From: Blastocystis sp. Blastoise
Lineage: Eukaryota > Protista > Bigyra: Opalinata
Length of the DNA stretch: 64,000 bases
Assembly (NCBI GenBank): GCA_039096225.1
Contig: JBBPEB010000030.1
Coordinates: 496,001 to 560,000 of the forward strand
Direction of reading: 5' to 3'
In this document: piece by piece, positions 52,776 to 62,096 of the stretch
How positions within the stretch are numbered: position 1 is the first letter of the stretch
Layout: each line of letters begins with the position of its first letter
Notes under the pieces: generated by a model
Told to the model about the DNA's origin: nothing
Databases searched by the model: none
The model's input: the letters and a program-made list of their open reading frames with translations, nothing else
Program-made: the position numbers and the translations under genes

Positions 52776-53045
52776 ATCTACAACTATAGTTAAGAATAAA
52801 GAAAATATTCTTAAAAAGATGTAATGGTGAAACGAGTTGTTATAAAGTAATCAATTATGTTTCTGTGTTTATTCATGGGAAAATGAATTTCTTAAAAATA
52901 TTATTTAACGATACTTTGTGTTATAAGAAATGCATTACAGCATATTAATGGACATATCAGAATGTCCAGAATAGACCTTGTAGATACCAGAAACTATGAA
53001 CTTAGAATATTTAATCATAACACTATGGACATTTTTTCAGGTTTC

Positions 53046-53257
53046 TGTCAAAAGGTCCAACGACTTTTTTGTTTTGGTTTCCCCAGTGGTGAGCAGTGAA
53101 AATTTTTAAATATGTAGCTGACAAAAGGTTATTTGATTTTTCTGTTTGGTTTCCCCAGTGGTGGAGCAGTGAAAAAATTTTAAAGGGTAGCTGACAAAAG
53201 GTCCAACGACTTTTTTGCTTTGGTTTCCCCAGTGGTGAGCAGTGAAATTTTTTGTCA
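53046..53257. repeat. Left subterminal tandem repeats of the CACTA element (3 x 73 bp)
   Basis: Units start at 53046, 53119 and 53192: TG(T/A)CAAAAGG...TTGGTTTCCCCAGTGGTG(G)AGCAGTGAAA. Confidence 0.9.
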
Positions 53258-53550
53258 GAGTTTCAGTGATTTTATAAAATCGAAAAGCAGTGCAAAAGTA
53301 TGACGCACCTTAAAACAATAATTGGCGAATAAAAATGGTTTTAAATATTCTCTATTTTTTCATTTATTGGCTTTTTTTATTCTTTTTGTGGTGTAATAAT
53401 AAACGATATAACAAAACAAACAAATTAAATATTATCAAATAATCATAAAAACAAATAATAGAAAACAATAATAATAAATATATAAAAAAAAGATAATAAA
53501 ACATATAATAAATAATATAATAAAATATATATAATATTTAATTTATAATA

Positions 53551-54254
53551 TTTCAACCAGGACAGTTTCAGTCTTTAATTTGCATTTAAGCCTAACCAAC
53601 CTATATAAAGAGATGATATTAGTTAAGTATTACTAATAATAATATATATATAACATTTTAAAATAATAATAAAATAAAAAATATATACCTTTTCTAATCA
53701 TTACAAGACAGGCAAGGAATCAAAGACAAAGAACCATCCTATAAAAGATATATGATAAATAGTATAATGAATAAAACAATATAATTAAATATATATATAT
53801 ACTTTTTATAAACCATTCTCCAATTGGCCAACAACGACAGCAACAGAACTTATGGAAACCTATATAAAGATAGAGTGAGTTGTAGAATATAATAATATAT
53901 GATATAATAAAATAATATAGAATAATAAAATATAAATATATACATTACTCCTATATAAATATAAAGTGGGGTTAGTTATATAATATGTAATAGATAATAT
54001 AGATATATATGTACCTTTTATTCATGTTGATTCCCTTCATTCTAGACCCAAGCAGCATAACTATAAAAATAATTAGAAAAAGAAATATATATATATATAC
54101 CTATAAGAGAACCATAACCACACACAAGAAGGAGCAGAACACTTAAGGAGACCAGGAATAGCCACAGCAAGAAGCAGAGACAGCTACTATAGAAAATGAA
54201 TGAATAGAGTAGAAAAAAATAAAATATAAAGAAACAGCAAACACCTACCATCAT
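53551..54254 (-). other. Cluster of small apparently spliced exons inside the transposon (lncRNA, micropeptide gene or pseudogene)
   Basis: GC-richer blocks 54101-54186, 54015-54060, 53803-53859, 53689-53738 and a block ending at 53600, each bounded by host-style ATAG| and |GTA signals on the minus strand. No long spliced ORF. Confidence 0.55.
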
Positions 54255-56095
54255 AATAGTATCATATGATATGAAATAAAGTAATAATTTAATAATACAT
54301 CATTATAATGATATAAGATATAATAAAATAAATATGTGATAAGTCATGTAGGATTTTGTTTTGTTATAAAAGGGTGTAATAGGAATTTAGAAGATATAGC
54401 TGAAATAATGAAAATAAACATGAATAATCTCATATCTACTAAATATAGAGAATCTTCATCATAAATAAAATGAATGGTTAAGAATAAAAGAGAAAGAGAA
54501 ATTTTATTTCTATGAGGAAAATGGATATTGTTATTGTTATTTTCAATTTATCCTAATTATTATTAATACTATAAAAAATGTTTTATTTTAAAGAATTATA
54601 TATTTATTTATCATTATAATGTTTTATAATTAGTTTAGACGACAGAAGAGTCATTTTTATAGTTAATTATCAAAATTATTCTTAGTATCACTTTGTAAGT
54701 ATAACTTATTTTTTAAATAAACCTAGGCTATAATACAGACTTATAGAGAAGACCCTGAGACTTCTAATCCCAAAACAAAAGTGATTCATATAATTCAGAA
54801 TGATTGTCTGAATCTTCATTTAGAGTATTAATTTGAGTCACATACTTTCAATAAAATGATTAAATAAAGAGAAAGATGATAAAAAAGGTCTAGAGTCAAA
54901 ATTGTTATGAAATATCAACTTTTTAATCTATTTGTGTAGATTTTCAATTATTTTAATATCATAATATGACTGAAAAGAAACAAAAAACATTTTAAAGTCA
55001 ATTAAGTCAACAATTGTAATCAAGTAAAAGTCTTTTAAAACCTCTTCATAAACTCAAAACGTATAGAGTGAGTGTTTTCCAGTTAAAATAATGTTTATTG
55101 TTACAATAATATCAAAAACAAATCAAATTATTATTTTATAATTACTCAAGAACAACTTTTTCTATCAACTAAGGACTCATAGCTATCAAATATGCATATG
55201 AATAAGCAAAAATAATATTTTGTATATTTTTAATTGAAAAGTCAGAATCGTGTTGATAGTTTACTATAAAACAAATGCAAAAATCACTTTTTTATCAAAA
55301 AAATGTTTAATCTCATTAATCGTTATATTCATGATTTATTCATTGTCTACTTACCGTGTTTAATCATCTTCAGTGATTTTTAGTGAAACTAAAATTATTT
55401 CAAATATATATTTTATTTTCAATAATAACAGAAACGTCTCATATTGCATATTTAGTGTCTAAATGAAGTTTAAACATGACAGTGATATCAATTAATCAAA
55501 AATTATAAAATATAAAGAATCTCCATTTTTATGACTTGTCTTAAATCATGTTAAGAGTAAATGAATGAATAGTTTCATTAGTCATCTGTATGATTTTAGT
55601 ATTATTTTCAAAATATTTTGTTTTTTAACAAGAATAAATTCTTAATTTATTGTTTATCAAGTCAAAAATGTATTTAAATGATTTTTTTCTACTGTACAAG
55701 GATACACTGATCATATGAAAAAAAAATTGCACAGAATCTTTTGATAATCTATTTTTGAAAAATGAGAATTATTTTTTGGAACTAAACTAATATTTTACGT
55801 ATAAACATTATAAAATCTCCTGAACAATCTTTTGAGAAGATTCTGTGTTCGACAATACACTTAATTAAGTAATTGATAATTGTTGGAATATTTTTGTATT
55901 GAATAAACTGTTTTGAATGTTTCTATGAATCATCTATATACAACTAATACATTTAATGATTAAATAAATACACATATAAAGAAAAAAATAGTAATTAACA
56001 TAATTGATCTTCACCTCTCTGAATATATATTTTTTGAAAATCTTATACAATATGAATATTAAAACCTATATATACATAAAATAGTTATATAAACG

Positions 56096-60235: not shown

Positions 60236-60730
60236 AGATAATAAATAAATAAATAAATAAATAAATAAATAAACATACCTAATAGAAAAAAATGAATTTG
60301 GTGATGTTGAGTCATAGGGAAAGATAACCAACAGAAACAGTAGAAAACAACCTAAATAAATAAATAATAATAAATAAAAATATAAAAATAATGAAAATAA
60401 ATAATAAAATGAATTAGAATTCTAATTCAAGAAAAAAAAAAGAAAGTTAATAATAGATAGAATGAATATACGATAAGTATTTTATCATATAATATTACAG
60501 CAATATAAAAAATAAAAAGATAAGAGATAATTATAAAAATAAATAAATACATATATACTTTGAAAACAGTTTGACATCATAGACGTTGTTGACATGGACT
60601 GAAGAGGACTCTTATAACCACGGACGAGCAGGAACCTATACATGCTAGAGAATGGGAGAATGTTAATATGGGTAAAGAATAAAAAATAGCAATATACATA
60701 CAAGGGAACAGTCTGAAGTTAAAATGAGCT
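60077..60730 (-). other. Apparently spliced 5' exons of a transposon-internal minus-strand transcript
   Basis: Donor GTATGT at 60701, exons 60559-60635 and 60279-60351, and an acceptor at 60234 leading into the pyrimidine-rich strand of the tract. Only a short hydrophobic ORF results. Confidence 0.5.
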
Positions 60731-61352
60731 TCTATTTTTAAAAATAAAGGCAAATAAAAATAGAATAAAAATAAAAAAAATATGTAACAAATGAAATATT
60801 TTCTAAGTCAATAGGCTCAATAGCGTATGGGTGTCTTCAGGTCTTAAAAGAAAAATCATTTTTGCGGGAATATCAAGAAATTCAAAAAAGTATATTTTCC
60901 CTCCTTTTTTCGCTGTCACTTTTTTTTAATATTTTTGACTTTATAGTATTAAAATCGATTCTTACAGGCATGTATAGACACTTTATACCACTTTTGAAAC
61001 TAAAAATCAAATATTCAAAAATGAGTGAAAATCACAACAAGCAAGAAAAACAATTTTGTAAGCTGAGTATGTTGTGTATAAGTATGTCTAACAACAGAGA
61101 TGATAAAAACGCACAACTCCTCTTGGTTTAGGACATAATTATGAATTCTCTTAAAAAAGCTATTTTAAACCTTAAAACGATACCCTGAACTATAAATCAA
61201 GTCCTGAATGATATTCTAAAGTCATATTTTTAAAAACAGGTTTATTGACGATAATCAATAAACAAAAACAAGAGCTTCTGTTTTACTTTTCTTTTTTGAA
61301 TTTTTAATTGTTTTGACTTTCTAGGGTAGTTGGCTAAAAGAATGCTGTCGTC

Positions 61353-61825
61353 TTTAGGCTAAAAAATTATGAATAAAAAAGTCAAGTCATTTTATTGTTT
61401 TTTCCTTGGGAAATCAAAAAGAAGAAATTTTTAGGTGTGTGTTGATTTAGGCTGTATAATGGTTTATATTGTAAAAGGACTTGACGAGAATGATTGAAAT
61501 GATAATATATCACTCAGAGAATACACAAATTTTAAAAACTTCTCACTCATGTAATCCATTCCTGAATTATAGACTTCAGAGAAAAAATTAAAGTCTTTTT
61601 GGTTTTAAACAGTCATTTTAAATCATAAAACACTGTAAAATAGTCAATATTTAGAATGTCTATGATTATATAAATAAACAATATATTTTGTAGAGTTATT
61701 TTTAAGTTTTTCTCGTCAAAAAGAGAGAAACTTGACAAGTTGGCGGACACTCTTTTCTCGAGTTTAGGCCAACGTATTTTTGATTAAAAAATCCCAGTCA
61801 TTTTGTTGTTTCTCTTACGGGAAAT
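61353..61825. repeat. Right subterminal imperfect direct repeat pair (61353-61414 and 61763-61825)
   Basis: TTTAGGC...AAAAA...AGTCATTTT(A/G)TTGTTT..CTT..GGGAAAT occurs twice. Confidence 0.6.
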
Positions 61826-62096
61826 AGGGTCAAAAAAACACAAAATGTCCATAGTGTAACTCCGAAGGTGATTAGTAAACTTCTAATTAGTCTCTATTTA
61901 TACAGAGCATACACTTTATCTCGTCTTAGTAATATTTTTTTATTGTTTAAGGAGATTGTTTTAATTACAAATTGTTAAAATATCACTGTATTAATAAAAT
62001 ACAATAATAAATAGAATTATAGAGTTAAGTAAAGTATTCCTAAAACATAATTAAAAAGAAAATGAAAAATTATTAAAATAAAAAAAAAAAATAGAT

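Follow-up and report, generated by a model that had tools for sequence, protein, structure and literature searches.

The sequence considered here is a 64,000-nucleotide window on contig 20 of the tortoise-gut, tortoise-clade protist Blastocystis sp. Blastoise, and the only large gap without genes in this window is taken up by an 8.8-kb element at positions 53021-61856, which lies in intergenic DNA approximately 245 bp upstream of a minus-strand gene. The element begins with the 15-bp terminal inverted repeat (TIR) CACTATGGACATTTT on the plus strand (53021-53035) and ends with its minus-strand partner AAAATGTCCATAGTG (61842-61856); the inverted repeat is perfect over exactly 15 bp, with a mismatch at position 16. 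Directly outside the repeats stand two identical trinucleotides, TAA at 53018-53020 and TAA at 61857-61859, forming an exact 3-bp target-site duplication (TSD), so that the left junction reads TAA followed by CACTATGGACATTTT and the right junction AAAATGTCCATAGTG followed by TAA. A first-pass annotation of the window, made by inspection of the sequence, had claimed both the perfect CACTA ends and the duplication, and both are exactly as described. It had also claimed subterminal repeats at both ends. On the left these are clear, with three tandem repeats of approximately 73 bp that are 65-88% alike at 53031-53253 (plus strand); on the right they are present in a weaker form, as dispersed repeats of 16-48 nt within 60760-61841 (plus strand), the best of which is a 48-nt unit (61367-61414 versus 61778-61825, 75% alike). 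The repeats of the left and right ends differ from one another. Excision of 53021-61856 in silico gives back ordinary intergenic DNA, for which the expected empty-site junction is ATCATAA directly followed by CTCCGAAG. Between its ends the element carries, from left to right, a cluster of exon-like blocks, a featureless middle region, a tRNA-like fold, a long purine tract, and a second exon-like cluster, each of which is taken up below.

The ends of the element recur throughout the genome (33.3 Mb in 34 contigs). The terminal 15-mer has 61 exact matches, which pair at distances of 8.4-8.8 kb into approximately 30 elements on more than 20 contigs. With up to one mismatch allowed, there are 33 forward and 33 reverse matches, compared with 0 forward and 3 reverse for the reversed control, and the 15-bp ends are therefore not a product of chance. 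Searches with internal parts of the element revealed additional, older copies of 81-92% identity on contigs 2, 7, 24, 25, 33, and 34, bringing the family to approximately 40 copies of around 8.6 kb, or roughly 1% of the genome. Tortoise isolates of Blastocystis have a total repeat content of 5.6-7.5%, and isolates of the tortoise clade have a GC content of 21-23%, about 12% low-complexity sequence, and long, variable introns (PMC12129017). The left-end 29-mer had no match in the metagenome contigs of the Joint Genome Institute.

We read the sequence of 20 of these further copies (21 including that in the window). The flanks differ in every one, and all are bounded by an exact duplication, which is 3 bp long in 14 of the 21 copies and 2 bp long in the other 7; the shorter ones are not decayed 3-bp duplications, since their register differs. 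In the Wicker classification, CACTA elements have target-site duplications of 2-3 bp. The copies fall into two subfamilies. The window copy belongs to subfamily A, which numbers 10 copies of 8.83 kb together with variants, and subfamily B comprises approximately 17 copies of 8.55-8.68 kb. Divergence within a subfamily is minimal: across 8.8 kb, the median is 2-4 substitutions. Recent activity, as proposed in the first-pass annotation, is thus borne out by some 40 dispersed copies with duplications of their own and by their near-identity within each subfamily, and the family is probably still mobilizable.

Comparison of the subfamilies also reveals how the copies have been reshaped. Subfamilies A and B are 92% identical overall, in a mosaic pattern (window coordinates throughout): identity is 99-100% at 53021-53815 and 100% at 61589-61856, and at 57553-60400 it is 96.8-100% per 100-nt window and mostly 100%, whereas over most of 53816-57550 it is only 66-91%, with exceptions of 96% at 53914-54013 and 92-99% at 54312-54611. 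A similar patch is apparent within subfamily B, where 27 of the 37 substitutions separating variants B1 and B2 (copies L035 and L038) fall into a single stretch of 230 bp, equivalent to 53622-53853 of the window and centered on an exon-like block, which looks as though a diverged relative had donated a short stretch by conversion. The mosaic and the patch together imply frequent recombination between subfamilies. Direct evidence of transposition comes from contig 13 (L041/L042, C13:909018-926269; C and a number denote the contig), where two tandem subfamily B copies are nested, one having inserted inside the TAT of the other's terminal CACTATGG; the inner copy is flanked by a TAT duplication and the outer one by GAT on both sides. 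One copy, L050, is 4.4 kb long and lacks the equivalent of 55758-59938, with intact ends and a GCA duplication. Apparent composite or interrupted copies lie in two other places: a stretch of 22 kb between family termini at C24:351410-373427, which holds approximately 7.8 kb of the element at 95% identity with the right end around 13 kb off, and a separate 8.4-kb copy at C31:1126751-1135165 that is chimeric between the subfamilies.

These dispersed copies also bear on two other readings of the locus that the first-pass annotation had raised: co-option as a heterochromatic or centromere-like island, and, as a finding that would refute the transposon reading, an assembly misjoin. The position of the element in the sole large gene-free gap of the window and its extreme purine/pyrimidine strand asymmetry would suit either one. 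However, a unit of 8.5-8.8 kb with exact ends and its own duplication is found at approximately 30 unrelated sites, often two or three to a contig, and its simple removal restores ordinary intergenic DNA. A centromeric repeat island would form a single clustered array on each chromosome and would lack transposon ends and duplications. Dozens of dispersed copies, each with its own duplication, are incompatible with a centromere and with a misjoin, and we consider both extremely unlikely.

The first-pass annotation had described the element as transposase-less, in agreement with every search that we made. None of its open reading frames (ORFs) matches a Pfam family; four ATG-initiated ORFs of the element are absent from a collection of 15 billion proteins; tblastn of 41 transposase-family proteins, drawn from Blastocystis lineages and plant CACTA elements, found no similarity to it (E > 2); and the Transposase_21 family (PF02992), which has four matching loci genome-wide, has none in the 8.8-kb family. 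A search with the same Transposase_21 profile, proposed at the outset as the way to find an autonomous partner, yielded a candidate on contig 23, where a PF02992 match (C23:375036-375410, minus strand) is flanked by family termini at C23:362896 (forward) and C23:378401 (reverse). The resulting 15.5-kb element (C23:362896-378401, of which we read 3.4 kb, L034) has the same 15-bp ends as the 8.8-kb family and shares with it, in the same orientation, the left 513 bp at 85% identity (C23:362896-363386) and the right 163 bp at 90% identity (C23:378238-378401). Only these ends are common to the two; in genome searches, no exon cluster, middle region, or tRNA-like module was found in the 15.5-kb element.

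The transposase gene of the 15.5-kb element is single-copy and intact, and its annotated product is a protein of 917 amino acids (aa), referred to here as P0121. Its score against PF02992 is 27.7 bits for the protein and 30.8 bits for the genomic match, with a cut-off of 28.6; it has in addition a weak match to DUF4218 and a phmmer match to plant CACTA proteins (E = 6e-7, 16% identical). In an alignment of the Blastocystis and plant groups, D263 (in a DG motif), D353, E695, C372/C375 (CxxC), and H671/H675 are invariant, as would fit a catalytically active CACTA-type DDE enzyme. The Mirage and Chapaev groups, placed with CACTA in CMC (Repbase, Yuan-Wessler), have a related DDE fold and 2-4-bp duplications; P0121 finds its best matches outside this genome among plant CACTA proteins. 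A HMMER scan of 1.84 billion representative proteins with P0121 gave 21 hits in total, of which the top 13, and all that were looked up except P0136, come from the Blastoise genome. P0136, one of the weaker hits, is a CACTA transposase of Asparagus that matches PF02992 and PF13960 strongly. The Blastoise hits comprise P0121, P0122, and at least nine further lineages (P0123-P0131 and their relatives) that are 21-29% identical to P0121; their contigs include ones with lengths of 532 kb, 1.32 Mb, and 1.36 Mb, and one 532-kb contig encodes several of them. CACTA-type transposase lineages are numerous in Blastoise and, among the proteins scanned, nearly confined to this genome. P0122, which is 53% identical to P0121, is present as three near-identical copies (L031-L033, at C5:498692-501934, C19:219420-222662, and C23:203845-207087); its annotated model of 1143 aa ends in 230 aa that bear no relation to the transposase, and two genes may have been fused in the model.

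On the observed ends, duplications, many dispersed near-identical copies, and lack of a transposase, we interpret 53021-61856 as a subfamily A copy of a recently amplified, high-copy, non-autonomous CACTA/En-Spm (CMC) transposon, with a probability of roughly 80%. The assignment to CACTA/En-Spm draws on the CACTA TIRs, the 2-3-bp TSD, the end-specific subterminal repeats, and the presence of Transposase_21 in an element with the same ends; the family is classed as non-autonomous in that it has no transposase of its own and has its ends in common with a transposase-bearing element. Under this interpretation, a transposase supplied in trans would bind the 15-bp ends and the subterminal repeats of the 8.8-kb element, and cut-and-paste movement would follow. 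The most likely source of that transposase would be the Transposase_21-like P0121 of the contig 23 element, and we lean toward the view that P0121 mobilizes the family by way of the shared ends. Excision and reinsertion by the family's transposase would be backed indirectly by the near-identical copies, the nested insertion, and the intact ends. Several points weigh against this interpretation or parts of it. Neither an empty site nor an excision footprint was seen; the argument for mobilization by P0121 consists of the shared ends only; the genome contains at least nine more transposase lineages, likewise divergent, and the element carrying P0121 is the one whose ends were compared; the Pfam score of P0121 sits at the threshold; and the interior might encode a short peptide, given a 114-aa ORF in the modeled spliced RNA of subfamily A. 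We regard the 8.8-kb family as confirmed in its non-autonomous CACTA character and its recent activity, and the single-copy helper proposed for it as plausible.

In many respects, the family resembles En/Spm (dSpm/I) and the other CACTA families of plants: the ends read CACTA...TAGTG, the duplication is 3 bp long, the subterminal repeats are specific to each end, mobility would depend on a Transposase_21/DUF4218 (TnpD-type) protein, and the putative helper is rarer than the non-autonomous copies. It differs from them in that the host is a stramenopile gut protist, that one third of the insertions have a 2-bp duplication, that the putative helper protein is very divergent (a Pfam score at the threshold and 16% identity to the plant proteins), and that the interior did not arise from the helper element by deletion, the two elements sharing only 513 bp and 163 bp at their ends. 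No CACTA element in Blastocystis is described in the searchable literature. Since the family is young enough to move still, it is a candidate natural tool, and a marker of strain differences, in a common lineage of gut protists.

We now turn to the interior of the element. The first-pass annotation had seen two minus-strand clusters of spliced-looking exons, and both are supported by blockwise GC content and by splice-like signals. Cluster 1 (53548-54186, minus strand) consists of blocks at 54101-54186, 54015-54060, 53944-53950, 53803-53859, 53689-53738, and from 53600 downwards, separated by AT-rich intron-like segments bounded by GT..AG; an AT-rich stretch at 53501-53547 lies directly beyond the last block. 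Cluster 2 (60279-60731, minus strand) has blocks at 60698-60731, 60559-60635, and 60279-60351, again with GT..AG segments, and GTATGT comes after its last block, where the pyrimidine-rich tract borders on it. The exon-like blocks have 35-53% GC and the intervening segments 3-15%; the latter start with GTATAT or GTACAT, end with TATAG, and contain ACTAAC-like branch sites, as do the host introns in the window. One intron-like segment of 40 nt (54061-54100, minus strand, GT..AG) is precisely missing in subfamily B. The deletion has direct TATAG repeats at its edges, which make replication slippage an equally good explanation and weaken the argument for splicing from intron loss. Between cluster 1 and the tRNA-like module lies the middle region (54300-56090), in which no ORF reaches 40 aa and GC content does not alternate as between exons and introns; here subfamilies A and B are 71-89% identical over most of the length and 92-99% identical over the first 300 bp, with several 1-bp indels.

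An arrangement of this kind raises the question of whether the element is in fact autonomous, with a transposase or a TnpA-like factor encoded in many small exons that ORF and profile scans would miss. En/Spm offers a precedent, in that its TnpA is assembled from numerous small exons that follow a large intron; the small exon-like blocks of our element lie on one strand; and translation of its hypothetical spliced minus-strand RNA yields the hydrophobic 114-aa ORF in subfamily A. However, this ORF stops after 58 aa in subfamily B and carries a frameshift in B2, and no reading frame is conserved between the subfamilies, whose indels are often 1 bp long or otherwise not multiples of three, which argues against coding. 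In addition, the element shows no similarity to the transposase lineages of the genome and has no Pfam hit. Within cluster 1, the exon-like blocks differ by 12.4% between subfamilies A and B and the intron-like segments by 2.4% (p = 3e-7), the reverse of what coding exons show; the same excess in exon-like blocks is apparent between subfamily A and L050, and cluster 2 has no such pattern. We consider an overlooked transposase in this element very unlikely.

The contrast between shared ends and an unshared interior likewise invites a Pack-type reading, in which the interior (exons, tRNA gene) would have been captured from host genes. The first-pass annotation had indeed called the element Pack-CACTA-like. 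Consistent with capture are the restriction of similarity with the transposase-bearing element to the ends, the exon/intron-like organization with host-type splice signals, and the finding that captured DNA in Arabidopsis Pack-CACTA elements is sometimes without traceable origin (PMC6379663). The definition of Pack-TYPE elements, however, requires an interior derived from host chromosomal genes (PMC6379663), and a DNA-level genome search with cluster 1 and the 1.8-kb middle region found no host parent for either, although a parent that is old or lost may escape a search of this kind; all matches of these two parts lie in copies of the family or in patches of a distant transposon family on contigs 16 and 28. 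No full-size tRNA gene has the acceptor and T arm of the tRNA-like module, and a conserved reading frame is lacking. The Pack-CACTA label does not hold in its strict sense, and we judge capture from host genes to be unlikely. The family does resemble the Arabidopsis elements in its CACTA-derived ends, unrelated interior, presumed mobilization in trans, and a partly untraceable interior, and it differs from them in carrying one uniform 8-kb interior in approximately 40 copies instead of many varied captures (PMC6379663). The 8.1-kb interior is a family-specific sequence of untraced origin with no conserved frame.

The largest single component of that interior is the purine tract, another feature of the first-pass annotation that proved correct, on the evidence of strand skew and repeat composition. 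It is a purine-rich, low-complexity sequence of approximately 4 kb on the plus strand (56165-60278), the minus strand being correspondingly pyrimidine-rich. Across approximately 56000-60500, GC skew is 0.5-0.96 and AT skew 0.34-0.61, the plus strand being nearly all purine. Its building blocks are (GAA/GAT)n (positions 56441-57364), (GATA)n (positions 58103-58229), and numerous purine units of degenerate sequence. An acidic ORF of 177 aa at 56402-56935 lies within it and is lost in subfamily B. A C/D small nucleolar RNA in the (GAA/GAT)n tract was considered and rejected, as the Rfam matches were sub-threshold, of low complexity, and taken as chance.

The tRNA-like fold that the first-pass annotation reported on the minus strand is likewise present, as a 68-nt cloverleaf at 56097-56164 with a folding energy of -19.6 kcal/mol (z = -3.9). 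It is made up of a 7-bp acceptor stem (CCTTAAG/CTTAAGG), a 4-bp D stem, a 9-bp central hairpin with a 5-nt loop, and a T arm (ACAGG-TTCAATT-CCTGT) carrying the B-box-like GGTTCAATTCC; its acceptor and its agreement with GGTTCRANNCC are those of a tRNA, and the T arm would make a good B-box. The module is not a canonical tRNA gene: the anticodon arm of 5 bp and 7 nt is replaced by the 9-bp stem and 5-nt loop, nucleotides 8-9 and the variable loop are missing, ARAGORN finds no tRNA gene in it, and Rfam gives no tRNA match at E <= 1. It may be compared with the mascRNA of MALAT1 and with tRNA-gene (tDNA) and B-box boundaries, to which it would be similar in its cloverleaf fold, its B-box-like T arm, and its location inside a longer non-tRNA unit, and from which it differs in its central arm and in the missing nucleotides just mentioned.

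Conservation marks this module as the best candidate for a selected part of the element. Its 3' 24-mer is exact in all 36 of 36 family copies, including those only 81-92% identical elsewhere. Between subfamilies A and B, the central hairpin has undergone one compensatory change, from A-U to U-A, of which a variant on contig 11 represents a one-sided intermediate. The distant transposon family (C16:809297-811090 and C28:202969-205422) has a 64-nt version, at C16:809297 and C28:205359, in which the acceptor, D, and T stems are exact and the central hairpin and T loop differ, and cluster 1, the middle region, and the module follow one another there in collinear order. By analogy, possible roles for the module include an RNA-processing signal, an RNA polymerase III (Pol III) unit, or a TFIIIC-bound boundary. 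A conserved tRNA-like module in a DNA transposon would, if functional, be of specialist interest.

These observations bear on a further reading, additional to the transposon interpretation instead of opposed to it, in which selection would keep the interior as a mobile and functional unit of non-coding RNA. In this scenario a minus-strand transcript would start at approximately 60.7-61 kb, cluster 2, a long pyrimidine-rich intron, and cluster 1 would be spliced, and the tRNA-like module would serve as processing signal, internal Pol III promoter, or TFIIIC boundary. The host-like splice signals would suit such a transcript, as would the exactness of the module in 36 of 36 copies, its compensatory change, its stems in the distant family, and the collinear order there; moreover, a sequencing run that we guessed to be RNA contains 46% of the sampled words of the element. 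Several points weigh against this reading. The sequencing run may be DNA; the copies are so young, and recombine so readily, that shared descent can account for most of the conservation; patchwise recombination between subfamilies can spread the module without selection; there is only one compensatory pair; and L050, at 4.4 kb, has neither the module nor the purine tract, although its ends are intact and a duplication flanks it. We treat an RNA unit maintained by selection as a tentative possibility, and the more specific proposal of a selected non-coding cassette, comprising a spliced minus-strand RNA and a processed or Pol III-binding module, in both this family and its distant sister family, as doubtful. 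If it were true, the cassette would promote the spread of the transposon or protect it against silencing, and the element would be a DNA transposon whose conserved payload is RNA and not protein.

One gene elsewhere in the window deserves separate mention. On the minus strand at 43534-45549 lies the gene for a 671-aa Na+/H+ antiporter of the NhaC type, whose best matches are bacterial proteins of the Firmicutes type (approximately 37% identity) and other Blastocystis proteins; judging from these matches, it is probably among the genes that Blastocystis is described as having received from bacteria.

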